The notes under the pieces were generated by a model. The model made no database searches. It was not told the origin of the DNA and saw only the letters and a program-made list of their open reading frames with translations. Of a DNA stretch of 64,000 bases, positions 8,736-59,800 are shown piece by piece (within the stretch, counting starts at the first letter, position 1; every line of letters begins with the position of its first letter). The position numbers and the translations under genes were made by a program. Source of the DNA: Bispira polyomma (Eukaryota); assembly GCA_965649765.1 (NCBI GenBank), contig OZ287751.1, forward strand, positions 44,268,001-44,332,000, read 5' to 3'.

Positions 8736-8846
8736 GATTATGTATTAGAAGTGCCGAAGGTTGTGAAGATTGATGGCAACGAAATGATTCGCGAGATGAA
8801 AAAAGATATGGAAGAGATGTTGAGTAAAAAGGTGGATGCTCTCAAA
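8736..8846 (+). CDS. CACNA2D: alpha2delta exon ([37 protein letters not shown])
   Basis: tacag|...|gtaagt, 111 nt, phase 0-0; resembles the IDG...MEEM..KK..A segment of alpha2delta-3. Confidence 0.92.
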
Positions 8847-14800: not shown

Positions 14801-17800
14801 TTTACTTTAAAAGAGTAAAATTGTAACTAGACCATTGGACCAAGTTTGTTAGACAGAGAATTGCATAAAACTACTGGACAAATTCCAAAGGCATATCTAC
14901 TTGAGTTTCACAAAAGCTACTGTTGTTTAGCTAAGGGGCAAAAAGCTGACACGTTTTTGCCATCCGAGTAAATTAAGTCCCCCTCCCACAGCGACAGTGA
15001 AGAAAGTCCACAAGGAGACTTTACAGTAATTAATGGTTGGGGGGTTTTTGTGTCGAGTATTGTATTCTTTTTGAAGATTAGGAAAAGGATCGCAGTATGT
15101 CACATCAGATACAAGTATACTGTGTCGTAATTTACATGTAAAGTGTCTGCCAACTCCCACACTGGGACCATTGGAGCACCCTGAACCCCCCTCCCTTTTC
15201 CTCCCCACACACCCACCCACACCCAACCTCTGAGCACAGAGGCCAATATTGACAAGTCTAAGAGCAGAGTCCCTCACTGTCTTGTATTAGTACAGGGTAA
15301 ATAGTTTACATACCCCCCAAAAAAAATAAACAAAAAGAGAGGGTTAGGTTTCTGTCAAAAATCAATTGCTTTAGAACCTCTATTATCCAAAAATTTCTGG
15401 AGAGCAAGAGCTAATTTAGATAATAGAAGACTAATAAAGGCAGTTTAGCATAAAACAATAAGAAGATGTACAAGTGTGGGAGTAAAAGTGTGTTGTTAAA
15501 ATTAAATATTCATATACATAGGTTAATCCAGGATATTGTACAGCAAGGGGGTGGATGGTTGGGGGTGGGGCTACATAGGGGGTCGTCCTGACCACATAGA
15601 CTCGGATTCGCCTATGACATAATAGAAGTATGGTCTGTGGTTGGTCTGGATATTGGAAGGCCCCCGGTTTAACTCCTACTAATACCGCTAGGGCTGTAGT
15701 GAATAACATCCTTGGGCCAGAGGTGAGCACAACATGGCCCGCGACCTAGGCTATGTTGCAGGACACATGAATATGGTTGATTGATTCGATTCTGTAGCCT
15801 CCGAGGTCACTACACCATTGTTGGTTACTGTTGTGTAACCTCTGAGGTCACTACACCATTGTTTGTTACTGTTGTGTAACCTGTGAGGTCACTACACCAT
15901 TGTTTGTTACTGTTGTGTAACCTGTGAGTTCATTGTACCACTGTTTATGACTATTGTGTGTAACCTCTGAGGTGACTATACCATTGTTTATGCCTATTGT
16001 ACTATTGTCCAGCCTCTGAGGTCCTGAATGGAGTTGATTGGTCTGAAGCCCTGGATCCAGTGTTTGTAGAGAATTACGAGAACGACCCCACCCTAACCTG
16101 GCAGTATTTTGGCAGCTCAGAGGGTTTCTTTAGGAACTATCCAGGTAAGAGATCATGAAATATGAAGATTTTTAAATCAAATAAAGATGGCAATATCAAT
16201 GTTTTCTGTATGTTAAACAAGCAAGTGGGAGCTATTTAAACACAAGATAAGATGTTTTGTTTTTCGAGTTTGAGGAAATTTAAATTTTATTGTTTTTAAT
16301 GCCAAGTTAAAAAAGTGGTGTGACTATTACAGTTTGCAGCTGATTATTTCAACTTAAGCCAGGAGAGCTGTAAAGGTATTTTAGTGGAATTGAAAGACTG
16401 AGTAGACTGTAGCAGTATTACATATTAAAAGGAACAATTAGTGCCGATTTTAATTTTTAAAACCTCAGAGTTTAGTTGTGTTACCAATTAATACAGGGGT
16501 TGGAGGTGAGTCTATAAATACCACTAGACCAGTTAAGCCCCACAAAACTGTACAAATATATATTCAGTATATGGAGTCAGACATGTGACATAATGTCAGC
16601 AATATTATCAGCTGACCTCACAGCTTTTGGAATGTTTGAAAAAAAAATAATCATATTTAGAAAGGTGTAAAATCGTGTTTTATGTACCAAAACATTGTTT
16701 TAGGTTGACATTTTATATTGTGTCAACGTTTTGGGAAACTTTCTCTAAAAAAAATAGAAATTAAAATTGACACTGAAAACCTTGAAAATTTCTGTAACTA
16801 CTAAAGTTTTGGTAGACATTTTCATGGGCGCCGTGTAATAAGAAAACTTAATGGTCCATATACCATCATAGTAGAGTGGGATACGCAGGGTAGTGTGTAA
16901 TAAATAGAATGTTATCTGAGCAATGTTACTGATAAGTTTTTATGCTGTGTAGGGCTGCGTTAGCATCAATTCCCAACCTGACTTTAAAAGAAAAGTCCTT
17001 TTCTCAATATAAAGGGAATTTGACTTAACAGATTTCTTATGGGGTCCAACTGTCTGATATAAAAGTATTCTTTGTGTCGATCCCACTTAAAGTTGCGGGA
17101 GATGGCTGTTTGTCAAAAACTCTTCAGTAATTCTGTAATTTTTTCAATAAATAGACCTTTCAAGTCTCAGTAAATAATGTAAATATTTTTGAGGCCCTTG
17201 TAGAAAATTACACTTGTGTTAGCCATTTGATTACTGAATGTTAACTGTTATACACTTTAAAGGATTAGAGTGGGAATTTGGTACAGTTGATTTATTTGAC
17301 TGTAGGACACGAGGCTGGTAAGACACTGATATAAAGTACTGGTGTATGTAGCCTTTATTTGGGCTCTAGTTTTATCTTTGCAAATTGTTTTGCACTTAAT
17401 AGCTAAAAGCACCCTTGCCGGGTAAACACCATTATATCATTGTGTGAGGGATCCATTAATTACAATAAGGATGTGGGAAACTTTGCACGACATTTAAGTC
17501 AGGACACCTAGTAAGTGTAATCCTGGTAAACCTTCTCTTTTAAGTTCGGATCTGTAAAAACTTTTTGACAATTTAAATGTTGTTTAAGTAATTTAAGCAT
17601 TATTTGTTTTGAAGTAAAGAGTCCTGAGTTAAAACCGTCCTGAGTTTTCATCTCCTTTGGAGTCAATATCTTAACCCCTCTTCCAGGTAGACGAGCACGT
17701 TGTACAAAATCTAATAATAGATTCATTCCTAGATCATCAATACAAACACTTTATGGTTTTAATGTCAAATACCATTGCTGTTAAATTCAAGTCTAGACAA

Positions 17801-20800
17801 TAGTAGTACAGTAGAACCACTATTATGGAAATTTCTGTTATCTGAATATTCCACTTGATGAACTCATTCCTATTTTCCCAATCTCTTCCTATTCTAATAT
17901 ACTAAAAATACCTCTTCTATTTTACGGACCTTCTAATATCCAAACAAAACCATGCTCTTCCAAGATGTTTAAATAATAGAGGTTCTACTGTATTGGAAAT
18001 GTCAATCATATCTATAACATATTGGGAAACTTGCATTTTATGTTTATCCATACTACTTTGCCTGAAGGTATTTGGAATGCATTTTTGTTCTCAAAAATCC
18101 CATTATTTCTCTGAGGATGAATGTGCTCTATTTATAATACAATAGCCAGTAATTCTCAAGATCATTTGTTTAAGGTTTGTTAATACACTTGTTTCATAAG
18201 ATAATCTAGATCACCATCTTCTCTTTTAGACTTTTAAAATAAACTAAAAGTGCCCATCTTTTTCATCTGGCCAGTACCCCGATTGTCTGACATTTTGGAA
18301 CCTCTAGTACAGTTTACGTTTAGTTCAAAATGTACTCATATTTATGATAACTTTCTTTAAGCACTTGTTTAAAATGTACACAGCAATTTATAAACCCTGT
18401 GTAGATATTACGTTATTATTCCTACATTTGTCATCATCAGCATTTATCATTATTCCTGGAATGTTTAATTTTCAATTCTGGTACATTTTAGAAAAACAAG
18501 ATTTTTTATTAATCTGATTTTTAGTTTGACTGTTAAATTACAATGGAAAAACTTTATCTGAAATATTTGGAAATTAAAATTTCAGATCTCAATAACACTT
18601 TAACAAATGCTAAATTACTATTTAAATCTTGCAACATCTTCTCAGTGCCAAACATTGACACTGTGGCACTGTTTACCAGTAAATCCTAAACTTGTCATAA
18701 GTTAACCTCGATCAGCATCTTAATGTAGGTCATCACCAATATAATAATTTCCTTTTCATACAGTCTGTTCGATTACCCTTGTTTCATAAAGATAGCTTAA
18801 TAAAGTTACATATTTTGGAAGAATGAAATGCAAAAACTACATTCCTTAATCCAAGATGGTCTTCAAAATGCGTCCTTTCTAGCTTACACTTATTACTGAG
18901 TCTTGAACACTACTAGTATTTTTACATGGAATGACATCATCTGTAAGTAATGTCATCAATAAGGTCATGAAATTAACTTATCAAGGTATGTAGAATGTCC
19001 ATATCTCTGAGAAAGATAGCATGCTTCAGAATCTCTCAATCACAAAAAGAGACTGCTTTTGGGGGGTCAGGATATGAGGTCCAGTTTAGTCACCAAAATG
19101 TCATGGTTTTTATCTTGGTCTATAAAATTACCTTGATATGACATTAACTGTAAACAATCCTTCCATATTCATATATAAACAGACAAACTTGGCCCAAAAC
19201 AATTCTACAATTCTATGTGCAGCTTTTACTGAAAATGAAGATATATGACCAACACCAGTGTGTTTTGCAAACATGCAGATACATATTTGGGAGAGATACC
19301 ATTTATTCACCCATTTAGCAATTTTTTTTATCTTTTGTTTGGTACCCAGTATTTTTTAAACCTATATCAAGATATTACTTTGTATAAACCCTTGTACAGA
19401 GCTGTAAGTTTGAGGTCTTTGTATATATATATATGTATGTACATGTGTGTAATGTTGTACGACTTACCATTGACCATACACAGGAATTCAGTGGAATACT
19501 ATGGAGATGGTGACCAATAACATAGACATGTACGATTGCAGAACAAGGGGCTGGTAAGGATTATGTCTGACTCCTGTGTGTTTGACCTTTTATAGTAATG
19601 TAGATGTTGTCTTATTTGTAATACTGAAAGAACCTTTATTATCCAATCAAAATGAGGAACATGTGTGATTCTCTTCAGATGACTCCTGTGTGTTTGATCT
19701 TTTGTAGTAATGTAGATGTTGTCTTATTTGTAATTCTGAAAGAACCTTTATTATCCCGTCAAAATGAGGGACATGTGTGATTCTCTTCAGATGACTCCTG
19801 TGTGTTTGACCTTTTGTAGTAATGTAGATGTTGTCTTATTTGTAATACTGAAAGAACCTCTATTATCCAATCAAAATGAGGAACATGTGTGATTCTCTTC
19901 AGATGACTCCTGTGTGTTTGACCTTTTGTAGTAATGTAGATGTTGTCTTATTTGTAATGCTGAAAGAACCTTTATTATCCAGTCAAAATGAGGGACATGT
20001 GTGATTCTCTTCAGATGACTCCTGTGTGTTTGACCTTTTGTAGTAATGTAGATGTTGTCTTATTTGTAATACTGAAAGAACCTCTATTATCCAATCAAAA
20101 TGAGGAACATGTGTGATTCTCTTCAGATGACTCCTGTGTGTTTGACCTTTTGTAGTAATGTAGATGTTGTCTTATTTGTAATGCTGAAAGAACCTTTATT
20201 ATCCAGTCAAAATGAGGGACATGTGTGATTCTCTTCAGATGACTCCTGTGTGTTTGACCTTTTGTAGTAATGTAGATGTTGTCTTATTTGTAATACTGAA
20301 AGAACCTCTATTATCCAATCAAAATGAGGAACATGTGTGATTCTCTTCAGATGACTCCTGTGTGTTTGACCTTTTGTAGTAATGTAGATGTTGTCTTATT
20401 TGTAATTCTGAAAGAACCTCTATTATCCAGTCAAAATGAGGAACATGTGTGATTCTCTTCAGATATCTGATTTTGATGTTTAAGTGGTAACTTTACAGCC
20501 TCTCACCAGAAAACACCTTTCTGTATCAACTCACTTTTACAGCATAGCATCCGCCGGTTTCCACTGGATGCTTTGATAACAGATATGTTTTGTCTATCTG
20601 ACTACTGTTTATTGAATCTTGATTAATATGTGTGTCACATATGATGTCACAAATGATATAACTTAAAGTTTCCAACAAATTGGACATCATGTCATTCAAT
20701 TACATAGAGGTAACTACTATTTGCTTCTCAAGTTTACAGATAAAAGAGGTTGATAGTGTGACATCATCATCTTCTGTAACATCTGCCATATAAATATGAT

Positions 20801-23800
20801 GCCATTATAATCACATGCCATAATATCTGTTTGTGACTTGTGTCAGTAAACAAACATAAACAAACCCAGATTGCTATTATTAGCTCCACCTAAAGGAGGT
20901 AAACATGGTTTTTCTTGTGACCATTGGTTGGTTTGTTTGGTACCTGAATTACACAAAAACTACTGAATCAATTTACATAAAATGTGAGGGATAGGGATGA
21001 GGGATGGGGCAAGTAAGAATCCATACGTAATCCCTAAAATTTGGGTAGAAGGGCAGACCCAGGATTTTTTTTACTTGTTTGACACTGTAGCACCTTGGCA
21101 GAAGTATGCACTCTACTGAGTGCTCTTACTGCATGTAGTTTGTTGCATGTAACTAATATAATTTAGCTGTCATAGCAGTTTCAATATTACCAGTTTGAAT
21201 GTACTTTTATTGGGTTGCCTTTTGTATGTTGTCGTGACTTTTCAATGTCTGTTATACTGAAGTTTGCTAAAGTTAGAACACAAACATAAAATGTAGCTCA
21301 CTTTCAACCCACGCACCACAAATTGTTACCCACATGATGCATGCCTGAAATTAGTTAATTCTTTATGCCCTGTTTGACTTATTTACACTTGTATTTTTGT
21401 GGACAATAAACTTATCTAGCAATGGTATTAACAGTTGCACATATTGGTGGGGGACTATTGCTTGTATTTTGTTGTTTTCTGTTAGATATTGTTTTTGTTT
21501 TCAAACAGTTTTTATGACTTTAGACAGTTTTATATCATAAAGATTTTGTTTATGTACCAAATATATGTTGCAGCATGACGATGGACAAAAAGAATTGTGA
21601 GCGTGTGACTTTTTAAAGTCAAATAAGAGATATTAATAATACATTCTATATGCATTCTACATATACTTACCTTGACATTTAACCTTGATCAATGTCATAT
21701 TGAAAGTTTTTGAATGACTTCATTTTGGCATCATTTGCTTAGAAGCATCTGCTTCGGCGTTGTGGTGGGATTTATAGATAGGTACTATAGAAAGATCTCA
21801 CGCCAATCACTTTTGTGGCCAATGCAAAAAAAAGGGTGACTAAGGGAAATGTTATCAAGGTAATTATTAACCTGTCTATCATTTATCAGTTTCTACAAAG
21901 TCTACAAATGAACTTATTGATTTCGCAACTATCTTGAATATTTAAATTGTGCAGAGGCTCATGGTACATAAAGAATGAGCGATGTTGAGATTATTTTCAA
22001 ACCACCAGGCTGAGGGTACAAAGAGTCTCTAAGTGAACTTAGTGAAGTCTTTATGTACAATGTTGGGTGGTCAGTCTTAATCTATGTGACTTTTACAAAC
22101 ATTTGGGCTAAATTTAGCATCTCAGTTCTTCTATATTTCATTGTAACAAACTATCTTTTCATATTTACTGGAGACACTGTAGTTTTGGGAATGCAAAACT
22201 ACTTTTTTTTAGACCTTTCTGCATATCTATTTAGCCATTTTTGATATATGACTGTGTCATAGTAAACTTGTAATGTGACGTTGTAAGGTGACACATGCAT
22301 TACCCTTGTTAGAGAATGGATGATTTTAATAACCCGCTCACACAAATGCACTAAGTTTAAGTCCTCTGTTTTAAATGTAGAATATTCTATGTATTTATGT
22401 TGCTCTGTGTACCTTATGCAGCTATTACTGTGACATATGTTTTTTTTTTTGTATGGGGTTTTATCATTTTCAAGTAATTTTTTACCTTAGAAATATAATG
22501 TAATTTCTAGTCATTGCTGTTTTCTAAATTCACCACTTTTGATCACTCTGACAATGTGTTAACATTAGCTGTTGTAATGACGGTTTGTCAGTATTAATAG
22601 TATTCAGGTAGCAACAGAAATTAATGAAAAGCAATATTTTTTGTAATTTTCCGTGGCGTGTTCTATTTCATTCTTTTTTTTCCTAATTACTTAGTACATG
22701 TATTATTTTACATTGACAATTAAGTGTACAAAAACCCGAGCAAAGTGGAAGTAGTGATATACGACAGAGTGTTATAGCTACAGTAGAACCTCTGTTATAT
22801 GAACATGTTCAGAGACCAAACAAAACTTTGTTCTGATTCTTTGCTATTTTTTTGGTTCAGTTTTGTGAATTACAGTGATCAAGTAAATGTCAACATATAT
22901 TTCTAATTTTTGGGAAAATTTTACTGACATATCTCTTGCTACAAAAAAAATAAATTAACCTGGCGTTGTGACCCTCTGTAGAAAAGACTATAAATACAAA
23001 GTTAAATTGAAATGTTTTGAAGATAATGGCATTTAGCACAATGTATATGAAAACTCTTCGACCACTGCATGACGTGTATCTTTACATTCCTACCAATTAA
23101 CAAAAGTTGAAGCTGTAAATTCTGTTTATAATAAACATCATTCTAAATTGAATGCGTGCGTTATGACCAGCATCAGGTATCAGTTTCCCCAAGCTGTGTT
23201 CACTAAAACCACTCATTAGGCAAGCCATTGGCGCCAGAATTTCCCGTCAAAATTGTTTACCTGCCCAAGAATAAACAGTGTTGTCCTCATTCTGGAAAAA
23301 ACCTTGAAGGAACAACAACTAAAAAGGAACTACATTCCTTTTTGGGACGCCATCTTAACTATTTAAACACACAAGGATATTTTAACTATAATTTTAATAA
23401 AAGACGTTTACAAATTTATTTACATAATATTTTAAAAAGAAAACGTTATATATTAGTGAGTGTTTTAGTCAAGTGGTGTAAAGTTCTTCTCTACCGTGTG
23501 CCTATATTGTGATTTGAATATGGGCCCGAAACCGGTGAATAAGCAGCACAATACCAGGAGCAAGAGCAAGGAGCAGTGTTATAAGTGTAAATCCAGTCAC
23601 CGTTTGCCTGTGGGAGACCACTGTTTGAGGGAAGGAGCTGCCGACCAGACGCTCACGTCCTCGGGTTCGGATAACCCAGACCAGTCTAACGCGTTGGAGC
23701 AGTCAAGCCAACAACAGGAGGTGAGGGTGACTCACAACTCCACTACTGAAGGTATGGAGCAGTCGCAAGGACAGGCAGCCAAGGGGAAAAGAAAACGAGT

Positions 23801-26800
23801 CGGCAGTGTAGATGTAATGGCCAAGTTAGATAAGTTCATGGAAAAATTCTCTCAGCTAGAGGAGCGAGTATCCAGACAGGAAGAACGACGGGACAGTGAA
23901 CTATCGCTCTCCACCAGGCCGTCGGCGCACAGCTCGCCAAAACGCAAGACCACTAGTGAATGCACTGAGGGATGAGGGCAGTCAGGAAAGACCGCGAAGT
24001 TACCTTCACTGGACTTCCTTCGGGGCAATACTACAATTCAGGAGGAAGTTGACAGGCGGTTGACACAATACCAGGACGTTTCCAGAGATGATCTGACAGG
24101 TATTTTTGTTAATAAGAAATCCATTAAGTCAGGTAGATTGCGTGTCGGTAATCAGAAAGTAAAAGTTTCCGTACCGTGGCCTCATGAGCATTGCATGCTC
24201 AACGAGCATATGAAAATGCCTACGTATGAAGATTTGACATTATGTCAGTGGGTGCAGGGCTATGCCCGATGCGTGTTAGAAGAGTCAGACGAAGAAGTGC
24301 GCAAAAACATGCTGCATTATCAATATCTGTTAATGCAGGATGCCATAGACCTCTCTTGAGCGACAGCAAAACGAGCCCATGCGGCAGTGCTGACCGAGAT
24401 AGAAAGGGAGAATGTCACTTGGGAGGATGTCGGTGAAATTGACCGAATTAGGCAACGCTTCACGCAGAGAACACTAAGGGGGGCCAGCTCGGCTAGTTAC
24501 AACAGGTCTACTAAGGAACAGGCTCAGAACGGTAAAGTAACTGTTTGTCAAAAATATTCAAAAGGGACTTGCAAATTTGATGGAGACCATTTCGAGGGGA
24601 GTAAGATGCAAAAACATTCTTGTGGGTATTGTTACAGGACTGTTCATAAGAATTATGACCATCCCGAGATTAAATGCAACCGAAAGGTAAAGGAAGGTGG
24701 GGCAAAAAGTCGTGAAAGCGGGGACAGGGCTGATCAGCGAGTTTAATGTTGTAAGGGCCACCTCCTACAGTATCACCAGTAGCGGCTTACATAATAATAA
24801 ATCCCAAATCAAAAAGGATATTGTAACAAAAAATCATGTCTGGGGAAGCAAATTTTGGAGTAGCCAACATTTGGGTCTGTGTAATTGTCATTGGTGTGAC
24901 ACCACATATTATATACCAAAAGGGGTGAATACTGTGGGCAGGGGCAACCCGGGATTTAACCCCACTGCAGTAATTAGTGGGAAAAACTCTTACGTCGCAG
25001 ACGCGGCTGGCTTGAGTAGTAGCTATACCAGTGTAGTTCACAATGTTTTCAATGTCAATATAGTGTTACTGAGAGATACAAATGTAAACAGCAGTAATTG
25101 TGGTTCTTTGTTGTATGAGTCCAGTGTAGTCAGTAAGGACAGTAGTAGTAGCTGGAGTAGTAGTGTTTCTGGATCACAGGATTCTTAAGTAGTGAGTCAG
25201 AGCAGTATAACAGATTATAGCTTTACCAAGGCTTGGGTCAAGGACAACTTTAACCCAGGGTTAAGTAGCATAAGGGTCCATGTAGGACATATAGAGAGCC
25301 TCATGTACAATACAGACTCTGACATGTCAAGTCTAGACAGGAAAAGGGGTCAGGCCCAGATAGGTTTCACCAATAAAGAATCAGTTGACGAGTCAGTTAA
25401 TATTAGCATGGCCATTAAGCAGGGTCAGTTTGGTGTTAGCTTTAGAATTAACAATGTCAGGGACACCTCAGTAACAGAACAATTTAGCCCTTGTGCAAGG
25501 TTAGATGGGGGGCTTTACCTGAGGACAAAAGGAGGGAGCCTTCAAAAGTGGCTGAGGGGGTTCATTCCAATTAAACCAGGCCCTTATGTACAAGTTGACA
25601 CACATGTAAAGGGTCTTGAGTTACAGAACAAAGACATGTTACAATGGGTACAAGAAGCACACACAATAGTGACACAAAAAGGCGTGCCAAATTATAAGGG
25701 GGCTAGAGTGGTAGTTCCTTCACAATTAAATATTCCTGCTTGGCGCCTCTACTTAAAGGATTATGACTGTTCGGTCGTTTGTGATTACCTACAATATGGG
25801 TTTCCCTTAGCTCTAGATTACAGTACTTTTCAGTACAACACACAAGTAGATAACCACGCGTCTGCAGTGGCATGTCCAATGGATGTAGACAAGTATATTA
25901 AGACAGAGGTTAGTTACAAGGCAATGGTAGGCCCTTTAACAGCTAGCCCTTTTGAAAAATTACACGTGTCACTTTTAATGTCCAGGCCCAAGCCAAATGG
26001 TACCAGGAGAATAATTGTTGACCTTTCATGGCTACGTGGTAGCAGTGTAAATTCGTGCATACCCCAAAACTTTTTCGACGACATTGAATACCAGCTTAAA
26101 TACCCAACAATTGATAATATAGTGGAGAAAATAGCCAGTTTAGGCCCACAATGTTTGCTTTATAAAATAGATTTACAACGGGCTTATAGGAATTTAAGAA
26201 CGGACCCGTTTGATTATTCTGTACTGGGTCTGGGTTGGGGGGGTAAACTGTATGTGGACGTTACGGTCCCCTTTGGCCTGTCCTCGGGCGCATGCGCGTG
26301 CCAGATGGTCACGGATTGCATAACTTACCTCTTACACATGAATAGTTATTGGGTATGTTCGTACCTCGATGATTGTATCGGGGTTACGCCTCCTGAAAAG
26401 GCTAGTCTGGCTTTCAAAACTTTTTATAATTTAATACAAAAGCTTGGCCTTCCAATTAACCAGGACAAAGTGGATACTCCCACAAGTGAATTGGTTTGCC
26501 TGGGTATACACATAAATGCACACAGGGGGCAACTTACAATCCCCACTGATGAATTAACAGAGGTAAAACAATTATGTCTCCAATGGAAATCTAGAACAAA
26601 AGCCACTCGCCGGGGCTTACAAAAGCTTTTGGGGAAGCTCTTATACATACATCGGTGTGTAAAGCCGGCTCGGCTCTTTGGTAATAGGATATTAGGAGTA
26701 CTTAGGGGAACCCCCCCTTCCACAGCTGTTGCATTGGGTAATGAATTCCCAAAGGATATAAACTGGTTTTGTGAATTTTTGGAGGACTTTAATGGGGTTG

Positions 26801-29800
26801 CACAAATACACCAAGTTGACAGTATTATTACACAAATATACGTAGATGCCTCACAAAGTAGTTTAGGGGCTTACTGGGATAATTAAGTTTATTCAGTACA
26901 TATACCTCAGCAATATAAAGATAATTTCACTATCGTCCATTTTGAGATGGTCAATATAATTGTAGCTTTTAGGTTATGGGGGCCCACATGGGCCAACCAA
27001 AAAATATGCGTACATTGCGACAACTTGGCTGTAGTACACATCCTTAATAGGTTTAAATGTAAGGATTTGTTCCTTAATGCATGTGCACGCACACTATGGC
27101 TTATTCAAGCGACATACAATATTGAAATTTCAGTGCAGCACGTTAGAGGTATTGATAACACCTATGCTGATGTATTATCCAGATGGGATCACTTTAAATG
27201 AAAAGATAAACCTGACGTTGCGTATTTAAAAACGTGTACATTGCATGAAGTTGATCCAACATGGCTCATACCTAACTTCAATATTTAATTATTTGTAGGT
27301 CACCCACTGGTAACTGGCTTGCTTCGAGATGTCAATACACGGGTTTCAAAGGGCTTTAGGCCCCGCACTTCTGCAGCATACCAGGCAAAATTTAGGCTAT
27401 ACATAGCTTTATTAGTACATTTAAAAGTCACATCTTTGTTTCACCATAATTCAGTGTTGCTATTTTTAGAATTCATGGCACAACAGGGCCACAAGGTCTC
27501 AACGCTTACGGGATACATTACAGTATTAAAACACTTCTTTCAGATGTATGACCTCCCTACAGGTGCTTTGCACCACAAAAAAGTGGCTCTTGTCATCAAA
27601 TCAGTCTCAAACAATGCACCACTTGCATACAAGATTAAAGGTGTTTTCTCCCCTAAAACCCTACAGCAGTTAGTGGCCTTAATTTCTGGGTTTCCTGGGG
27701 CCAGCCATTACAAAGCCATCATTTTACTGGGATTTTTCGGGTTCTACAGGCTAGCCACACTAGTTCCCAATACAGCTGCCCAGTTCCAACCATCCCGGTT
27801 TCCAACTGAAAGGTATGTAGTATGGGGGTCGCCTGGGGCACATATACTTACCAAATGTGCAAAGAATATGCAAAAGTCTGGCCAAGTTCAGGTAGTGCAG
27901 ATTCCAAAGCTCCCGGGTTCCCCCATTTGCCCAGTTAAGGCGTTACAATACATTGTCCCAAAGCACACATTTAATAAAATTCCCTTGTTCAAATACTCAC
28001 ATAAAGGTTCAGTGGTTGTCATCACTTCCTACAAAGTAAGGAAAGTACTCACTTCCCTCCTGAAACGGCTTGGCCTGCCTCCAGCCGAATTGGGATTTCA
28101 TGCTCTCCGTCGGTCGGGAGCCTCATGGGCTTTCGACCATAATGTCGAATTGGAACACATTAAGGTCCATGGGGGCTGGCGGTCTGACGCAATTTGGCGT
28201 TACCTCATTAAAACTCCCACAGCAGCGGGTCAGGTGGCAACTACTTTTACTCAACATCTTTCACACACACACTGATACTCCTACTCTTTGGGATTGGTGG
28301 TTTCAGTACATGCATATATATAACTTATATAACAACAATACTGTAAATAGTTTAAGTAGTAGAATAACTAACAAAAGTAGTCGGTAAACCTTAACGCTAG
28401 GGTCATCTATAAACAACAACCGGGGTGACCTCAACTTAAGCTTAAGATAACCCTAAATTCTAGTGTAAGGTCACCTTAAATCCATAGTTAGTGGCTGTTC
28501 ATAGGTTAACCTCAACTTAAGTTAAGGCCAACGTACATTAACAGTTAAGGTAACCATAAAGTCACAAGTAACAGCATAGGCTAGTGAAATCAGATGGTTA
28601 ACCTCAACTCAAGTTAAGGCCAGCATAGGTTAGCAGGTAAAGGTCACCTTAAAGTCAAAAGTTAAGGCCTTAGCCGCAGTTTAAGGGGACCTTATGTTTA
28701 GTAGAGTAGTCTAACACATTTAAGTATATATGTATATTATATGTTGTGTATTTTAATAAAGCCCAAATGATGTAATGAATTTGTTTACTCTGTGTTCCAC
28801 TATATTTTCATTTGGATCACCTTGATCACTATCAGCACAGCTTGGGGGAAACTGTAAATTGAATGCGTGCGTTATGACCAGCATCAGGTGTCAGTTTCCC
28901 CTAGCTGTGTTAACTAAAACCACTCATTAGGCAAGCCATTGGCGCCAGAATTTCAGGCCAAAATTGTTTACCTGCCCAAGAATAAACAGTGTTGTCCTCA
29001 TTCTGGAAAAATCCTTGAAGGAACAACAACTTAAAATGGCCCGCCCACCCACTTCCAGAAGTAAGAGTGTAACGAGTTCAATAAGGGCAATATGTGTTTA
29101 TCAGTACAGTGCTGTTCCGAACTGGGATCTCCACGGCTGGGGCCTGGGCCTCAGGGCGTGTGGCGGTGGGTCCTGTCTCTCAACTTTCCCCTTAGCTGGT
29201 TGAATAGAAGCTCTGAGAGGCAGGACTCCCTGCTGCTAGGCGAATTGGTGCCGTGGACCCGGGGTCCCAGCCCCTGCTTGGGGGTTTTTGGTTCTGAATA
29301 GATTTAATAAGTGTGCGATGTAAAACCGGTCTTTACGAGACCTGCTCCTGTGAGCCCTCAGCCTTTATCAAGGCTCAGTCTTACATGACTGCTTACAATT
29401 TTTGTATTTTCTTTTTGTTAGTGAGCTATAAACACCACAGGTTTTAGGTTTTTAGTGTACATTTTATGTTTTAGCGTTAGTCCCTTTACAACTATAACTG
29501 AGCTTAGCATGTGGTTTCAGTACATACATATATATAACTTAACATACAACAATACTGTAAATAGTTTAAGTAGTAGAATAACTAACAAAAGTAGTCGGTA
29601 AACCTTAACGCTAGGGTCACCTATAAACAACAACCGGGGTGACCTCAACTTAAGCTTAAGATAACCCTAAATTCTAGTGTAAGGTAACCTTAAATCCATA
29701 GTTAGTGGCTGTTCATAGGTTAACCTCAACTTAAGTTAAGGCCAATGTACATTAACAGTTAAGGTAACCATAAAGTCACAAGTAACAGCATAGGCTAGTG

Positions 29801-32800
29801 AAATCAGACGGTTAACCTCAACTCAAGTTAAGGCCAGCATAGGTTAGCAGGTAAAGGTCACCTTAAAGTCAAAAGTTAAGGCCATAGCCGCAGTTTAAGG
29901 TGACCTTATGTTTAGTAGAGTAGTCTAACACATTTAAATATATATGTATATTATATGTTGTGTATTTTAATAAAGCCCAAATGATGTAATGAATTTGTTT
30001 ACTCTGTGTTCCACTATATTTTCATTTGGATCACCTTGATCACTATCAGCACAGCTTGGGGGAAACTGATAAATGAACCAATAGTTAGAAATTGTATTAT
30101 TATTCTCATATAAAAACATAACAGTTTCTGGGAAAATTTGTATTTGTTTGTAATCATACTCAGTATTCATAGCGCAGTAGGTATTCTAGGGATTTATAGC
30201 ACTAATTGACTGACCACGTACATACTGTCCATTCCCCTGACTAAAGACACAAGATTGGTGACCATTTATGAATGTCCCTAAGGTTTGTTTATCCTACGAC
30301 TAGGGATTGGATGCAATGATAGAGGACCCCCGTCATCCTAGCCACTATGTATCTGCCTGTACCTGAGGTTTCCCTGCTGGGTTTGAACCCAGGTCTTCTG
30401 TGTTCCTAAGCAAGTGTGTTACTCATTAGTTCACAGTGAGCCATAAAGCTCATATAAGCATGTTTGTGATGATTAAAGAATTCTAGCCAAAATATAAAAA
30501 TTTAAAAATCTGTGGAATTTTTCAAATTAATTTATATTTAGCATTCAAGTCACTGGTTATAATTCGTCTAGGTACATCCAAGCAGCAACCTCACCAAAAG
30601 ATGTGGTCATTCTGCTGGATGTTAGCGGCAGCATGACTGGCCTTAGGATGGAGATCGCCAAGGCAACAGTGGAGAAAATCCTGGACACCCTTAGTGACGA
30701 TGACTTCTTCAATGTTATGAATGTAAATTGTTAAATTTTGAGAGCTATATTTTAGTGCCACACAAAGAGTATATCATTAATAAGCCACTGTTAGAGCTAT
30801 ATTTTAGTGCCACACAAAGAGTATATCATTAATAAGCCACTGTTAGAGCTATATTTTAGTGGTTCGCAAAGAGTAAATCATTAATAAGCCATTGTTAGAG
30901 CTATATTTTAGTGCCACACAAAGAGTAAATCATTAATAAGCCATTGTTGGAGCTATATTTTAGTGGCTCGCAAAGAGAAAATCATTAATAAGCCACTGTT
31001 AGAGCTATATTTTAGTGGCTCGCAAAGAGTAAATCGTTAATAAGCAACTGTTAGAGCTATATTTTAGTGCCACACAAAGAGTAAGAGTAAGTCATTGATA
31101 AGCCACTGTTAGAGCTATATTTTAGTGGCTCGCAAAGAGTAAATCATTGATAAGCAACTGTTAGACCCATATTTTAGTGCCACACAAAGAGTAAATCATT
31201 AATAAGCCATTGTTAGAGCTATATTTTAGTACCACACAAGGAGTAAATCATTAATAAGCCACTGTTAGAGCTATATTTTAGTGGCTCGCAAAGAATAAAT
31301 CATTGATAAGCAACTGTTAGACCCATATTTTAGTGCCACACAAAGAGTAAATCATTAATAAGCCATTGTTAGAGCTATATTTTAGTACCACACAAGGAGT
31401 AAATCATTAATAAGCCACTGTTAGAGCTATATTTTAGTACCACATAAAGAGTAAATCATTGATAAGCCACTGTTAGAGCTATATTTTAGTGCCACTGAAT
31501 AGGCTTAACCTTTTTCTACACAACATGGCAGTTGAAGATGAATTAAAATTTGTATTGTTTGGCCTGTCTGTGAAGCTCATGCTCCCTGTATTGCAGTCCC
31601 AGTTTGTCATTATTGTTTTCGTTTTACTTCTCAGTTTTCCTCCAATGCACGCTATGTAGATGAATGTTTCAATGGCTCCCTGGTACAGGCTAATGCTGAT
31701 AATAAAAAGGTAGGTTAAAAACAAACAAAAATAACAACAACTATACTACAGCACATATATTAGAATTAGATTATTACTTCTCTCTAAAGTCTATATGATC
31801 AAGAGGGTAGTTTAATTTTATTAGAAATACCCATAGTCAATTTATTAGAAAAAACTCCTAGTCATTGCTATGAATCAATTTCCTGAAGGTAGGACAAGTA
31901 AATTAACATTGGTCTGCGAATCAGCCACACATTGATAATGATTGCTGAAAAATGGCTGAAATTGTATTGTATTGTATTATGGATTTTGATATTATATTGA
32001 TGCAATGTATCTTCTAAATCAGCAATATCAAAATATGTGGGTGTTGCAGTAAAATGTGCAGTAAAATGTACTATGCTGTGCTAAAATAATGCTGCATTAA
32101 AGTTCAATCTGAAGAGATTTTGCAAAAAAAAAATGGTAAGCCTATTGGTATTTGGTTTAATGGCTGTAAATCACATCAGTATTTTGATAACATTAGCACA
32201 CTTGTCTCACATGTTGTTCTTTGCCTGTGTTCTGCTATTTATAATAGAGAATTTCCGAGGCTCTGAAGGACATGGCTACAGAAAACATTGCCAGATTTCC
32301 TGAAGCCCTCACTGAAGCCTTTGAACTGCTGAAAATGGTAAATTGTGTCAACACTGACACTTCACTTCATTGTTCATTGAATTTCTTAAGAATTGTACAG
32401 TAGTAATAATATTTTATTTCGGTGACAAGTGTATATCATACATATAACAGTTTAGATACAGGTTTGTAAAAGACAAACAAAGAAAGAACACCCAACCATT
32501 ATGGCTTATTAGTCACCGTCAAAAATCAATACAGTGTTAAACTTTGGTGAAACAAAATAGAATATAATTACAAAAGTGGTTAAATTAGTGGAAATTTCAT
32601 CCAGCTAAAATTTCTGCTTAGTATATAGCATATAAGTTTATCAGAATATCACACTTGGAACTGGGCATTTGTGATAAAATCATTTGTAAATCATCAAATA
32701 TACTGATAAATAGATGAAACTATTGAAATAATGTCAACAAAGTAAACTACATGTAACTGTAATGCATGTAATCTGTAAGACAGAAATTTCTCTCTGACTT

Positions 32801-44800: not shown

Positions 44801-47800
44801 TAGCTGTTGGGTTACAGCTTCGCCCAAAAACTAAGAGAAAATTGTTTACAAAGGTCATGAATTAGAAATCACAAATTTAAGATATTATGGTATCCTTTGT
44901 TTATACTAACTATAATATATTGACCCCTGGTTATCACATATGGATATGAAGCCAGTGATGTGTGTGTGGGGGGGGGGCTTTAGAACTCAGGTGGTAGTCA
45001 ATATACGTATAAAAATAATAATAATCTAGTGTACCCTTTACCTTAGGATTACATCCATGTGATGAGTCGGCCCATGGTTATCAAACGGGCTAGGCCCACC
45101 ACTTGGACCAGTGTCTATGTAGATGAAGCGGTAGGTGGTGGATATGTGTATAGAGTTTAACTCTCTCTGTTACTTAGACAATAACCATCTACACCTTGTA
45201 CAGTAGACTCTGGAGATTGTCTAATATACCCAGGATTGGGTCCTGGCTGTTCAAATTCCACTTATTAATTGAATTAGGAAAATGGGAAAAGATTACAAAA
45301 ATGGCCGCTAGTTGTATAAAAATCCGACTTCTAATGGCTCTAGAGAGTCTACTGTACCTAGGTAGTATTATAAACACACCAGGGATGTGGTATTCACAAA
45401 AGGTTTTAGTCTTAACCATTAATTGGTGGTCTGAGCTGTTGACCATCAATGTCAATATTTTGGTCTTTAACTCCTAGCAACATTAAAAATAGATTTTAGC
45501 ATGGCGCTAACTGTGTTTGTCGGACTAAGAGTCTAAGAAAAATCCAAGGAATTTTGTAATATTCCAAAAAATAATCTCAGGTTTAAGCTTAAGTAAAGAC
45601 TGAGCCCTTTAGTGAATACTGGCCAAGGTCATCAGGCTTTGACTTCTATCTTGTATCAGCTCATGTTGCTTGTGACAATTATATAGTCTTGAATGATGAC
45701 TTTAGAGGGGGGTTGTATAAGGTAGTGTGACAATGTTAGTTAACTTGATGACTTCTTTGTTAATTTGATTATACATACTTATTCTGTGGACATACATTCC
45801 AACCCCTTTCAGTAGAATTCTGCATGGTTCCTTAAGATGCGACTTTTCCATTCCTCTGTTGCTATTTTATGGTGTAACTTTGATATTATAACAATACACC
45901 AAAGTAAGTTTAGATTGAATTCAAAAATCAAGTATTGACTCTACCCATATAAAAGCCTTAACAGGTCTTACAAGTTGCAACTGTAATGACCTTTTCCATA
46001 TAAAAAGTTTTACAATTGGACCCACCTTTTCTCTATCGAAGGTTTTACAACTTGCAAGAGCATGATTGCCTTTTGGTGAAAAAGGTAGGCTTTGTTAGTC
46101 AAAGAGTGAGTCAAAGCTTGGCCAAGTAACCCCTGGAGACTGGGTCACACACATTCTACATGGAGAATAATCAAAATATATATATCCAATCAGTTTATGG
46201 TAGCTTCACAATAATATGACAATTGATCTATCAATTTCCTAGCTATACATTTTTGTGCAAATTATGCAGAAAAAGTTAGGAATCAACTTACCTATAGGGA
46301 GAAAGACAGTAAGATATGTGTCACTGAACTGTTTAAGAGAAGCAGCCATAAACTGAAATAGGTGTACTTAGGAGAGTTAAAATCTTTGTACAATGACATG
46401 TTTTTCTGTTGTATTATCTGCATTCTGTGTGTTAGGGCTGGTATTCTTGAAGTAAATTCATGCTTAAACTCATACTCGGCTCGGATATAGGCTTTTTAGA
46501 AATGGAAATAACCTGTACTTATGACCATTCGTTTTAATAGAGCTATCATCACTGAATTCAAATATAAAGTCAGATTTTATATATGTTTACAGAATCCAGA
46601 GTTGTAGAGAATCCTGATTTGAGTTGAGTTTGAGCTGAATATAGGTCCGAGAATATAGCCCAAGATCTTTTCTACACACAATATTATTCCGTATTGGTGA
46701 CTCTATGTATAATCTGCTTTACATTACACACTCTCCTGCACAGATTATAGTGGTTCTAATTCTCTCTGTTTGCACTACATGCACCCATTTTACTTACAGA
46801 GGCAGATAACTAATACATGTACTTCCAAGGGGTATGGGTGTTATTGTATATTTATTGCACTGCTATTTAAGTAAACTTTGTCTATATCAGAGCAGCATCT
46901 GCCAGTTAGACCACTGTTTTTGGAGGCCATCTTTCCACAAACAACGCTTGTTCCAATTCCCTCAGCAATAACATCTCACATTTTGAACTGAAGACCATAT
47001 TTTTTATCAAACTTTTTACTAAATCTTCCCTTTGTCAGTTTCTGTTTTTGCAAATTTGCTTTTAAATGGACAGTGAATGTCACTGCTTCGTTCATGCGGA
47101 AAACTTCACCAGGTACTTGCCATAGGTTGATAAATTCCAGTAAAAATGGGACTACCTTAACCAGTAAATGCAGCTGTAAGAAAATAGAGAGTACTGTAAA
47201 ATACCAAATAATCATCACTACTCTTTCTGTACGTATTACTATGCATTTTTCCCATGTGGAACTTTAAAATGACAAATTAACTGTAGTTTTGTGTAATATT
47301 GGGGACAAGCTGCTTGTATCTTTGAATGATTGACTGACCATATTTTCTTTCATTTCTGTCTCTAATATGTCTTGATATAAGTGTAAACTTTCTCTTTAAA
47401 TGTGACCTAATGAGAATGAAACTTGTCAAGTACATGTACATTATAGAAAATCCAATCATTTTAATTATGGTGCTTATTATATGATTAGATTTATAATGGC
47501 CTAGAATGTATTACCTGTTCTAGTGTAGATCTCCATCAAGCACATTATATTGCCTTCCTTCAGCGACATCAAAAGACCTTGTTTTCCTCAGTGCTGCAAA
47601 CTATACTTTAACCCAAATGTAGACATATAGCCCTGTAATTAATTTCAATTTAATTTTCTTATAAATTTTCCATTTTTGGTGGAACTACTTTATTGAAATA
47701 ATCAAACACAAATATATATTGGGACGTCTTATTTTTACTCCTAATTCCGCAAATTTTTGTTTCTAATTTCACAAATTTGGTTGAGATATGTGATCACAAA

Positions 47801-50800
47801 AAAAGAGCAAGATACTCATGCACTATTATTGTATGCTAGTTTTGTGGTTTTGTGTCTGTTACTGGTTAGAGGTACCTCTTTTGTTTAGCAGTATAATTCA
47901 TATTGCTGTCTTGTTGTCAAATTTATTTGAAATATGCATATGTGTGTGTATATATATGAAAAACATAACAATGTTTATATGTGAAATATCAGTTTCTACA
48001 TTTCATTTCATCCATCATTGCAAGATGTTATTTAGTTTATGGTTAGTTCATATGGACAATTAAAATATCTGCTGTATACACATGACATACCTATATCTAA
48101 TACTACATGGCACACCTTCTAATGGTACATGACATACCTATATTTAATACTACATGGCATACCTGTCTAATGGTACATGACATACCTATTATATCTAATA
48201 GTAACTGTACATCCCCCACACAGGATTACATTGGAGTGGTCAGTCGGCCTATGGTGATTGCTAGACCTGACATTTCAGTCTGGACACCAGTCTATTTATC
48301 TGCCATTTCAGATAATAGTGAGGTTTGTCACTGATTTCTTTCTGTTCTACTGGAACAGAGTAACTGTATAATCCCTTTAGATATATCTATAGGTGGGGGA
48401 GTTTTAAGTACTTTGTGTATGGTGTTTACTGGTGATAGAATAAATGGTTTATTACTAAAACCTCCATATAGTGAACATTCATGGGACCCCGCCAAAATAT
48501 TACCTATAAAGGGGTGTTCACTATTTAGAGGTACTGTACATTTCACCAGTATCAAAAGGGGACTGTGAAAAAGTGTTCACTATAGGGAAGTCTTGACTAG
48601 TCAGAGTTGTTTTCCCAACAGCTTTATGATATATATTTATGGGCTTGTAAATTAATTATTATTTTATCTGATCCTAAAAAATTTTGTACATACTTTCTGG
48701 TGCAGTTTTTAAAAAGGTTTACATGCAATCAAAGTTTGAATATATGAAGGTAAAGGTAAATATTAGTTGCTGATCAAATCTTTGTAGTGTGAACATTGCC
48801 AACATTTGTTTGAAATGTGTGATACATTTTCAGCAGCAATAGTATTTAATGTATTCTGTGTAGCGCCTCATTACTAAGGGAACAATACCTATATTCTATA
48901 GAGATCTACTTTCTTTATTCTGCTATAAAAGTTTTTAACATATTTTGCATTTATTCATTTATTTGCATGGCAATCAAACGTTATGCTCAAAACAAACTTT
49001 TTTTTAGTTTTCCTGTAAATATGAATAACAATTTTTCTCCCATTTTGCCCTGATTCATAATAAACCCTATTTAAATTTGCCAACTTTTGTATTGGTAAAT
49101 CATTTAGCAATGCAGTTGATCATCAAAAATATTTGAAGGACATTTACAAATCGCTTTCTTTGATGCTGCCTCCTTTTTATTAGGATCCTGTATCAGTTAT
49201 TGCCAGACCATTGATCCAAGCAAGTAAGGATCGCTTCGTTTGGCCTTCTTCTGTCCTAGTAGATGAGCGAGGAGTCTCGGTATACACACATTTTTTCTTC
49301 TCTTATTTTGAATCCCACCAACTTTTTCTGCATCTTATCACCCTACAACCTCTTGTATAAAAAAACAGTCCCTATTTTACTAGAGGTTACCTTTGAATGT
49401 TTATACTCCCACTGAAGGCGAGTGGTTTTTGTTCTCACCTCAATTCTGACTAATAGTCTGCCAGCCTCTTTCTGGCAGCAGCACTTTGAGCGAACTTCTA
49501 CAGCAGAACCTCTATTATCTGAAGACCTTCGAAGAGTATGTTTAAGTATGGTAAATAGAGGATCATTAAAGAGAAGAGGCGGAGATCTAAATATATAAAT
49601 TGGGAGAGTGAAATTGAGTTCATAAAATTGAATATTTAGATTATAGGAGTTCAGATATCAGAGGTTCCACTGTGCCTCTAAAACAAGACTCAAGGATCTG
49701 TATTGCCTGACTCAGAAAACTATTGTTATCTTGGGTAGGATACCTTTTTCAAACATTTTTTTAAGATAGAAATTAGAGGTTACACTTTGATAATAGTGTA
49801 GTATTACCAAATGGTGCAGTGATAGACTAAATGACCTCTGCCAAGGAAGTTATGTTTTTGTCAGGTTCTGTTGAATTGTTTGTTTGTTTTTCATCGGGAT
49901 TACACATAAATTGGTAAGGTATATTCACTCTCCTATAAGTGGCCTTTTACTGGATATTTTTAAAGAAGGAAGCCCTAGTGATAACACCAACCTATTTCAA
50001 ATTTAACAATTATAGCATTGTGCTAAACGTTTTTGCAGCTTCTGGATTGGTCATGTAGTCACTCTTAACTTAAAAATGATTTAAAAAGGTGAACTATAGA
50101 GTTTTTTCCTCCCATCCGTCATAAAAGGTTTTTACTTCACTATAACATACTTTTTGTTTTTGTCTAATAGGGCTATGTATAGTTTCTAAATTTTAAAACA
50201 GTAGTTTGCTTTTATCACGGAAAAGTAAGTAGTTCTTTAAGTTGCCTGAATACCCAAGTCATTTTTGTTTTTAACCATTTTATCCATACATAACTATAAA
50301 ATCACCTTGTATGACACAGGTTGTGCATGACAATAGGTTCTCATCATACATCCAAAATATATCAGCTGACTAGACTAAAATTGTTAAAATTACATCTTAA
50401 ATAGATTCTTACTAACTCTGCATATAAATATATTTTGGAGTATAAAGTGAATCAGAAATTTCATGGTATTATAAAATGAATCTTTGTTTTGAAATATTTT
50501 AGGATTAATTAAGATTAATAATTGAATTGTGACGTTACAAGTTTGTGTTGTCAGAGTTTGTCTTCTTATAGTGTACTAACAATCAATCACATATAATGTA
50601 CACTGAAATCTGTGGTCTCTCTATCTCTCCAAACTAAACATATTCTAAAGAAACAAAGTTACATGAAATCTGACTGTGTATTCAATTTCAGCATTGAAAG
50701 CTCTACTACCAAAGTTGAATGGTTACAAGAATATTATGGCCACGTAGTGGGATCACGTAGTTGGATGTACACAAAATTCCATAAAAGCTTTTATCTGAGT

Positions 50801-56800: not shown

Positions 56801-59800
56801 TAATTGTGTAACATATATTATACCTAGAAACTCATTACCTTTAAAACGTATACTTCCCGCAAACAAGGTTGGCGAGGTATGCGAATACTGGAATTGGTTA
56901 GTCTGTCCGACCATGAACACAATTTTTTTTTGGCCACCACTCGCAAACTAGACTTCCGATTTTGACCATACTTCGTGGAGGGCTGGTACATGGGCTAAAG
57001 AAGACACCAGTAACTATTGGGTCAGATTCAGATAAAAGTAAGTGAATACTGAGTATCTACTTTGTACTTTATTGAGTATTTGCCTTATAAAAACTACTAG
57101 AAATTGGTTGTTTTGCTCAAATAAGTTATTCATCTACTTTTTGATATACCATCAGATGGTAAACTTTGAGAGGTCTAGATCTGTAGCTAAAGCATAGACC
57201 TTTTCAAACCTTTTTAAAAAGCGGTATCCTGTGGTAATTTCCTATCCCTGGCTATCCCTAGATTTTCCTGTTAAATATCAACTTTAGTTGTATTAATCTC
57301 CTCTACAATTTGAAGGTATTTATATTCTTTCAAGCTGTTCAGATAAAAGAGGCTCTATATGTTCTGTGTTTTACAGCAAGGAGATGAGGTAAAGCCAAAC
57401 TACAACAGTGTGGACTTGGATGAAGTAGAACTCTCTGATGTGGATGGTCAGGTAAAGCAGCCATGAGTTCTCTATATATCTGTGTATGGTATTACCTGTA
57501 GGGATATCACGAAATATGATGTGGATGGTCAGGTAAAGCAGCCATGAGTTATCTATGTATCTCTGTGTGGTGTTAAGTATAGGGGTATCACCAAATATGA
57601 TGGGGATGGTCAGGTAAAGCAGCCATGAGTTCTCTATGTATCTCTGTATGGTGTTAAGTATAGGGGAATCACCAAATATGATTTACAATTAGGAATAACC
57701 CATGACAAACTAGAATATACAGCAAGTTTACCAAACTCAGAGTTTGGGTTTTATTATTTTGGTTTTAATTATTTAACCTGCCCTGTAACTATTAAGCAGA
57801 GATTTGGATCAACAGGTGGTGAATTCATCAGTTGTGGCTAGTACCAGACTAGGGACTAATTGGTATACAGTATATACTTTGTATTCTGTTAACACCAACC
57901 CCACAGGTGCAAACATCTACAGATAAAAACATTTTTCTCATCACCACACACCAACCAGATTTTGGTGGACCAAAAGAAGTCATTTCCAAAAACTGGGACT
58001 TCTTAACCAGATCAAATGACGCAAAACACCTACATGATAGAAAGGTCATTTTTGGACACAGACGGAGCAAAAATTTAAAAGACATTCTAGTCAATGCCCG
58101 CGTTCAATACAAACCCAAGGACAAACTGACAGGCATCAACCCGATTGCGCACGTAAACCCTTGCACCACCAAAACCTGTCGCTATTGCCCCAAACTTAAC
58201 CGGTCAGGCAAAATCACCAGTACTTTTACAGGCCGAGACTACTCAAGCAAAATCCGAATTGACTGTAAAAGCGGAAATTTAACATATTGTATCACTTGTA
58301 AAACTTGCAAATTACAGTATGTTGGTCAAACTAAAAGAAGACTAATGGACAGATTCCAAGGTCACTTTTACAACATCTCTACCAAAAACACTAAGGACAC
58401 TATAGACCAACACTACAACCTTCCAGACCGCAACGGACTAGAAGATGTTGAAATACACATAATTGATTTCATTCATGCCCACCCTTTAAGCCCCAACGCA
58501 TTAAATATCAGAAGAACCATAGAGCGCAACTGGCAGCATAAACTTAGAACAAATGCGCCCCAAGGCCTCAACATACAGGAATAATCCAGGACTTACCCAG
58601 CAATCCCTTGCCTCGTTTTAAAAAAAATAAATATATATATATATATTTCAGATTGCTGGTAACTCCATGTCATCTCCATACCCCTTCGGGCTTGGATTCC
58701 TAGGTACCCTTGTGACTAAAAACCCTTTGGTCTGGATAAACCCTTGGTCATCCCCCCATTGTAATCCCCAATCAAACCATGTTACACACCACCGTGGTAC
58801 CATGAGACACTCACTCAGAGTATAGAGTATAAGTGGAACTGGGATAAACCATCCCACACTCTATTCATAAATTACTTTACAATGTACAGTTTTCCCTACT
58901 AAAGGGAAAAATTCCACCTAGTTAGCCTATAACTAACCCCGAACTAATCAGGTGAAACGCGTCTGATGAGCCTCTTCGGCGAAACCGTGTTCAGAATCCA
59001 TATAAATTACCAATAATAATATGGAATGGCAACACCCCTTTAATAAGACCATCATCAGTCTTGTGATGTCACGACCACTATGACATCACAATACTGTGAC
59101 ATCACAGTCACCCCAGTTAAGACTGGTCAATCAACAAATTTATTTAAATATATTGGACACAGGATACTTTTCCAAGGTTACCAGATGTACATGTTTTAAT
59201 CCAAATCATTCTAGCACGGTCACGCAACCGGACAGACGTACTGGAGAGCCATAGTAACTTCTTGCCACGTTTCAATATATATACTTTGTATAGGGTTGTG
59301 TATTCATCAGTTCTTGTGGTGTGGCTAGTACCACACTAGGGACTAATTGGTATACGGTATATACTTTGGATAGGGTTGCATATTCATCAGTTGTTGTGGC
59401 TAGTACCAGACTAGGGACTAATTGGTATACAGTATATACTTGGGATAGGGTTGTGTATTCGTCAGTTGTTGTGGACACCTGACTTCTACTACTTCTAGAC
59501 AGTCTACTGTATCTATTCCACAGTATTCTGTTTGCTAGTCCTATCTGCTATATTTTCTGAGCATACATTATCTTCTATTATGTACATGAATATGGATATA
59601 TGTAACATATCCTCTATCTTAATTTGCTCATTTTATTATTTTCATATGTATTTATCAACTCAAAGTTACTACTGTATTTTAATTTCCTTCAGAGATAATA
59701 TATTCATATTGTGTGAGATTTACAAGTCTGACTTTCTGAGTTTCTGTGTTTGTATTGTGTTATTGGCTTATATTAGTAGATCATACCATCTGTGTCTTGT

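Follow-up and report, generated by a model that had tools for sequence, protein, structure and literature searches.

We analyzed a 64,000-nt stretch of the genome of Bispira polyomma (assembly GCA_965649765.1, contig OZ287751.1, forward-strand positions 44,268,001 to 44,332,000; hereafter the window, with coordinates counted from its first base) and found that a calcium-channel alpha2delta gene of the alpha2delta-3/4 (straightjacket) type carries two tandem copies, 1A and 1B, of an exon predicted to line its amino-acid pocket. Can one alpha2delta gene offer two versions of its pocket by splicing? We think that it probably does, as follows. The ancestral phase 1-2 exon of an alpha2delta-3/4/straightjacket gene would have been duplicated in tandem, and every productive mRNA would take exactly one copy, 1A or 1B. 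The first copy would keep the ancestral short loop, and the second would bring a loop of greater length, together with a hydroxyl-bearing Tyr (in this species) able to hydrogen-bond the ligand carboxylate. Exon choice would be a regulated selection, with products that include both copies or neither removed by nonsense-mediated decay (NMD). The outcome would be that the pocket or the loop around it is modestly tuned, in affinity for small amino acids, in accessibility, or in contacts at the surface, probably jointly with a second duplicated cluster in the same gene, which changes the amino-side strand of the pocket (Asp454 to Ser). The parts of this account differ in strength: from the features described below, mutually exclusive use of 1A and 1B appears highly probable, and we put the chances at about even that tuning of the ligand pocket is the function under selection.

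The pair lies between two constitutive exons, and all four are on the plus strand. The upstream exon (16013 to 16144; 132 nt, phase 1-1) was placed by a Pfam VWA_N match (E = 6.7e-19), by alignment to alpha2delta-1, and by its splice sites, and it encodes the end of the VWA_N region. The downstream exon (30572 to 30722; 151 nt, phase 2-0) finishes a Trp codon and begins the VWA domain. Between them, exon 1A (17263 to 17317; 55 nt, W-x7-F) and exon 1B (19484 to 19553; 70 nt, W-x12-Y) sit as adjacent homologous exons of the same phase (1-2) in one interval. Each has an intact AG acceptor and GTAAG donor, and both end in DCRTRG-W. These positions, lengths, phases, shared ends, and donors are as given in a preliminary description of the locus, which had also claimed that the inclusion of both exons or neither breaks the reading frame. 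A local frame check bears this out: each exon is 3n+1 in length, and the frame between the flanking exons is open with 1A only or with 1B only. Joining 1A to 1B creates a TAA at 19518, inside 1B, and skipping both creates a TGA at 30634, 86 nt ahead of the next junction. A stop codon that lies far enough upstream of later exon junctions usually exposes an mRNA to NMD. Both stops have junctions far enough downstream for this rule to apply, and NMD is thus a plausible filter.

A profile made from the exon's last 11 codons was run over the entire 14.4-kb interval. Exons 1A and 1B scored 36.4 and 31.2, and because the next-best site scored 0.7, they are not chance matches; the same scan found no third copy of exon 1 in this interval. 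Comparison of the two exons over 13 ungapped codons revealed nine synonymous differences over 7.2 sites, which is saturation, and six nonsynonymous differences over 31.8 sites (pN 0.19). The tandem copies descend from one phase 1-2 exon, and both are under purifying selection, as the preliminary description had proposed. The pair is not an assembly duplication, because in Logan DNA contigs, which come from three runs of a single study, 1A is followed by 1B at equal, single-copy depth. Those runs may be the source data of the assembly; they exclude a mis-join and are not independent support. No exon junctions were seen in these three DNA-type runs covering the stretch, as expected of DNA.

We then asked whether relatives keep both exons, a check that the preliminary description had suggested. 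They do. With the same phase and in the same interval, Capitella teleta (55 and 73 nt), Dimorphilus gyrociliatus (61 and 64 nt), and Lingula anatina (55 and 61 nt) each carry two copies of exon 1, and an ENA contig that ranks with the annelids (L002:2281-3866) carries three (55, 55, and 85 nt). The RefSeq isoforms X1 and X2 of Lingula differ by the exchange of exactly this segment, one version per isoform, and so do X1 and X2 of Lineus longissimus. An unbroken 1,172-aa homolog (P0161) with a long B-type segment is encoded on a Logan contig of 4.7 kb. At each of the five loci for which DNA was available, the last copy exceeds the first in length. The first copies are similar to one another and to the single-copy orthologs (W-x7), and 1B and the second copy of Capitella are reciprocal best matches, which suggests one duplication in annelids. 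In Lingula and Lineus, the second version bears no close similarity to the annelid B type; from these sequences, one spiralian event with losses cannot be told apart from independent repeats. Amphioxus, a millipede, Ridgeia, and the fetched Owenia gene have one copy of the exon. Elysia has a single copy over the 10 kb downstream of the exon, the only stretch viewed there, and the isoform sets of molluscs, insects, and vertebrates hold one version each. In Owenia the intron that follows the exon is missing, and the exon is fused to the next one (L005:29454-29539), so this gene cannot make such a switch.

Several points weigh against the account of a tandem duplication with one copy per mRNA. 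We infer from genomic sequence that the exons are spliced, and that both are used, in B. polyomma. The Lingula and Lineus RefSeq isoforms are gene models. A second copy of exon 1 is absent from Ridgeia and from the fetched Owenia gene, so the duplication is dispensable in some annelids. Finally, the frameshift is in itself no evidence of selection for NMD, because the 3n+1 length comes from the ancestral exon. An unused relic copy in this species, or an artifact of assembly, would fit the first of these points, and the gene models of Capitella and Dimorphilus each use one copy and miss the other. Both copies nevertheless have open frames, canonical splice sites, and signatures of selection, both positions are retained in distant annelids, and the DNA contigs carry both at single-copy depth. 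We consider a relic or an artifact extremely unlikely.

What kind of gene hosts the pair? Its in-window part runs from 8736 to 63832 on the plus strand, as traced exon by exon by tblastn with homologs, and the gene continues past the window. The exons flanking 1A and 1B match Pfam VWA_N and VWA as well as solved alpha2delta-1 chains. Among named proteins, those of Capitella, Ridgeia, Dimorphilus, and Paralvinella are the closest, and the named homologs are annotated as alpha2delta-3 or -4. The next exon after the pair has 35 to 38 identities over 50 positions with vertebrate alpha2delta-3/4. The VWA_N, VWA, and Cache architecture and the Tyr209, Phe217, and DCR residues are those of the alpha2delta-3/4/straightjacket clade, and on exon-wise similarity and these diagnostic residues we assign the gene to that type. 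An alpha2delta-1/2-type paralog lies elsewhere in the genome (L017, G000:C4, about 15302550-15303880, minus strand); it has the motif YDVRRRPWY on a single exon, a W-x7-Y loop, Tyr at 209, and Met at 217. With Tyr at 209, this paralog need not bind gabapentin. Two more distant VWA_N genes are on C3 (L019 and L020).

In rabbit alpha2delta-1, the leucine/gabapentin pocket is formed by Trp207, Val209, Tyr219, Trp225, Tyr238, Arg243, and Trp245, together with Tyr452, Asp454, Ala455, Leu456, Thr463, and Asp493 (10.1101/2022.12.05.519047). On alignment to alpha2delta-1, the equivalents of Trp225, Tyr238, Arg243, and Trp245 fall on the duplicated exon; exon 1 encodes the carboxylate half of the dCache_1 amino-acid pocket. 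Both copies retain the two Trp residues and the motif Arg. They differ at position 238 (Phe in 1A, Tyr in 1B) and in the loop running from 225 to 238, which has 7 residues in 1A, the ancestral-length copy, and 12 in 1B, five more. The preliminary description had singled out this Phe/Tyr position, and it is a genuine pocket residue: Chen, Mondal, and Minor give five differences that set gabapentin-sensitive isoforms apart from insensitive ones, and Y238F, which costs the ligand carboxylate a hydrogen bond, is among them; they also describe a steric change from Val209 to Tyr (10.1101/2022.12.05.519047). A second steric change is from Ala217 to Phe, and in docking the bulky residues limit alpha2delta-3/4 to small amino acids (PMC9901441). 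The motif of dCache_1AA amino-acid sensors is YxxxxRxWY ... Y-x-D (PMC8915833). Exon 1B has its complete first half, and 1A has Phe for the first Tyr, as in alpha2delta-3/4. Unlike those sensors, both isoforms here carry the bulky residues of alpha2delta-3/4, and an effect on ligands is a prediction.

The preliminary description had gone further, proposing that splicing at this locus mimics what separate paralogs provide in vertebrates. Spelled out, splicing would do the work of those paralogs by choosing between an alpha2delta-1-like pocket, able to bind gabapentinoids or bulky amino acids, and an alpha2delta-3-like pocket. The listing of Y238F among the five isoform differences is in keeping with that proposal, as is the combination of Tyr238 hydroxyl, Arg243, and Trp245 in 1B only, with Phe in 1A. 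Six species have at least two versions, and in three of them (this window, Capitella, and Lineus) one version has Phe where another has Tyr. The likeness of 1B to alpha2delta-1 holds for the W-to-Y spacing, but it is coincidental, as long-copy loops run to 9, 10, 10, 12, 13, and 17 residues; that of 1A to alpha2delta-3 holds for the Phe at the first motif Tyr but not for the loop, which has 9 residues, not 7, in vertebrate alpha2delta-3/4. Against the proposal, the upstream exon shared by both isoforms encodes Tyr, Phe, and Asn at the positions of Val209, Ala217, and Tyr219, respectively (rabbit alpha2delta-1 numbering), and thus neither isoform has the small residues and Tyr219 of alpha2delta-1/2; the blockers Tyr209 and Phe217 are constitutive. 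Position 238 is unchanged between versions in Dimorphilus (Phe/Phe), Lingula (Phe/Phe), and the ENA contig (Tyr/Tyr/Tyr), and it varies freely among the homologs fetched (Phe in 33 and Tyr in 20 distinct loops, most from single-exon genes, with a bulky residue at 217 throughout). Because the genome has a separate YDVRRRPWY paralog, albeit one with Tyr at 209, splicing is no substitute for a missing one. We therefore reject gabapentinoid mimicry; a choice between the two vertebrate pocket types seems quite improbable. Both isoforms look like alpha2delta-3/4, and gabapentinoid binding is expected of neither.

A different possibility is that the copies are mutually exclusive and that selection acts on the length or surface of the loop, through contact with the extracellular loops of alpha1 or with another partner, the Phe/Tyr change being incidental. 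Loop length differs between the first and last versions in six of six species, and the Phe/Tyr residue differs in three of six. In AlphaFold models of the short and long Lineus isoforms, the helices and strands are the same and the variable part is coil in both (mean predicted local distance difference test scores, 76 and 84). A loop in alpha2delta-1's first Cache domain touches repeat III of alpha1 (PMC9901441), although the literature searched names no residues of the Cache1-alpha1 contact, nor this loop as a contact. The long loops have little sequence in common, and both the second cluster and the loss of the motif Arg in Lineus point to the pocket itself. We regard selection on the loop as a real possibility, and we lean against it.

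In L. longissimus, the long version of exon 1 is without the motif Arg. Comparison of two Lineus proteins (P0274 and P0273) indicated that the version in most isoform models has Gln in its place, and the motif Arg is also missing from cephalopod, Tubulanus, and some other homologs. Loss of this Arg abolishes binding in mammals (PMC8915833). A version without it is possibly a natural binding-off form.

The gene has a second duplicated cluster, made of copies of the exon that holds Tyr452 and Asp454. Exon 2A (45047 to 45130, plus strand; 84 nt, phase 0-0) encodes the Tyr452/Asp454 strand of the same pocket. Exon 2B (48224 to 48322, plus strand; 99 nt, phase 0-0) keeps the Tyr and has Ser for Asp454. 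A candidate exon 2C (49184 to 49279, plus strand; 96 nt, phase 0-0) is diverged, has lost the motif Tyr, and is uncertain at its 3' end. For the second half of the dCache_1AA motif, the Tyr is thus present in 2A and 2B and absent from 2C; the exon near 56200 has, in its GTD segment, an Asp that by its place is a candidate equivalent of Asp493. The 2B-type Ser copy is also found in Capitella (L004:7259-7351), Dimorphilus (L006:10396-10491), and the ENA contig (L002:12435-12521), so that the Asp-to-Ser change is common to four annelid-type loci; Ridgeia has a weaker candidate. There was none in Lingula, Owenia, the millipede, or amphioxus, and no 2C-like third copy was seen at other loci. Because the exon lengths in this cluster are multiples of three, exclusivity in this cluster cannot depend on a frameshift.

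The two clusters of duplicated exons in the window both involve exons that line the pocket, and this, with the Lineus Arg loss, would favor pocket tuning over drift. A bolder reading is that annelids rebuild both halves of the pocket by two independent mutually exclusive exon clusters (here as many as 2 x 3 versions) and that the first site was reused by brachiopods and nemerteans. We offer it tentatively and think it rather doubtful. If it were true, such repeated and long-retained duplication of just the exons lining the pocket would imply that the pocket senses an endogenous ligand with isoform-specific selectivity, and the clusters would provide natural on/off and specificity variants for the drug-free role of the pocket. 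Isoform models of Lingula (P0155 versus P0153) and Branchiostoma (P0281-P0287) have variable inserts right after the Tyr452/Asp454 exon; because brachiopod and amphioxus models carry inserts there, the junction is a hot spot where splicing changes recur.

How might the use of one copy of exon 1 per mRNA be kept? The intron between 1A and 1B is 2,166 nt here and 195 to 2,615 nt in the other loci, and the donors are all U2-type GT. We rejected steric exclusion, as the intron between the copies is too long, and a U2/U12 clash, as every donor is U2-type. None of the hallmarks of physical exclusion (a short intron, a U2/U12 clash, or a competing RNA structure) was found. Competing pre-mRNA structures, with a docking site and selectors, could take the place of regulated choice plus NMD, and this mechanism is described as common for such exon arrays (PMC6071210). 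An inverted pair does flank 1A (17159-17182 with 18884-18907; 24 nt, 83% complementary, about -22 kcal/mol), and its arm upstream of 1A is not a common repeat. The pair is no stronger than shuffled controls, however; the best real duplex between the two introns (-26.4) lies inside the range for shuffled sequences (-24.0 to -30.2), and no intron element common to the species compared was found beyond chance-level AT-rich matches. We consider control by such structures unlikely. Regulated choice, with decay of the frameshifted products, would be the most likely route for exon 1.

Tandem duplicated exons of this kind are familiar from calcium-channel alpha1 genes (CACNA1A-E, Drosophila cacophony, and Ca-alpha1D), in which adjacent homologous exons of equal phase are likewise used one per mRNA; such exon substitution in alpha1 genes is old, is under purifying selection, and is enriched in channel genes (PMC9741552). 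Unlike those cases, the exons described here belong to the auxiliary alpha2delta subunit, are of unequal length, and map to a ligand pocket. The text of a catalog of homologous mutually exclusive exons in humans does not contain CACNA2D (PMC9741552). Vertebrate alpha2delta-3/-4 (CACNA2D3/4) and Drosophila straightjacket share the domain order and the clade-type residues around the exon, and the amphioxus and millipede genes share its intron phases. However, the vertebrate, amphioxus, and insect proteins fetched have one version of the segment, and the amphioxus and millipede genes have one genomic copy, in contrast to the two found here. Splicing is known for regions A, B, and C of alpha2delta-1 and for exon 23 of alpha2delta-2, and gabapentin binds with lower affinity when region C is lost (PMC9901441). 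Those events, too, fall within Cache domains, but they are cassette or alternative-acceptor choices in loops off the motif, whereas here homologous motif-bearing exons are exchanged. A literature search, with most subscription journals outside its reach, found no description of this event. The splicing mechanism is known and in itself ordinary; the gene is apparently new for such exons. The exon pair is real and old, and it is not a paralog mimic.

These findings bear on what the amino-acid pocket of alpha2delta proteins, the target of gabapentinoids, does physiologically, above all in alpha2delta-3/4. A switch in splicing that is kept in several spiralian lineages and changes only pocket-lining residues and the adjacent loop would provide matched natural isoforms, with which one can ask whether the alpha2delta pocket senses anything, and what. 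The comparison also corrects the annotation of Capitella and Dimorphilus, whose gene models each lack one copy.

At least 15 further exon positions of the gene were mapped across the window, which contains no N, by homologs. Those on the plus strand located by homolog tblastn include exons near 8736, 12849, 13602, 31635, 32248, 32830, and 41487 and near 42456, 55736, 56200, 56662, 57377, and 63761. The intron after 1B holds a DIRS/Ngaro-like tyrosine-recombinase retroelement on the gene's strand (23100 to 29330, plus strand, ends approximate), recognized by RVT_1 at 25189-26883, a weak Phage_integrase match at 27289-28272, and repeated ends near 23220 and 28931. It lengthens this intron and is no part of the switch. 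An open reading frame at 57853-58581 has a GIY-YIG match (E = 1.2e-5) below the Pfam cutoff and is probably a fragment of an intronic Penelope-like element. A very high-copy short repeat lies between 1A and 1B (17905-17994), and tandem arrays at 19568-20464 (112-bp unit) and 30741-31495 (52-bp unit) begin 15 to 20 nt past the donor of 1B and that of the downstream exon.

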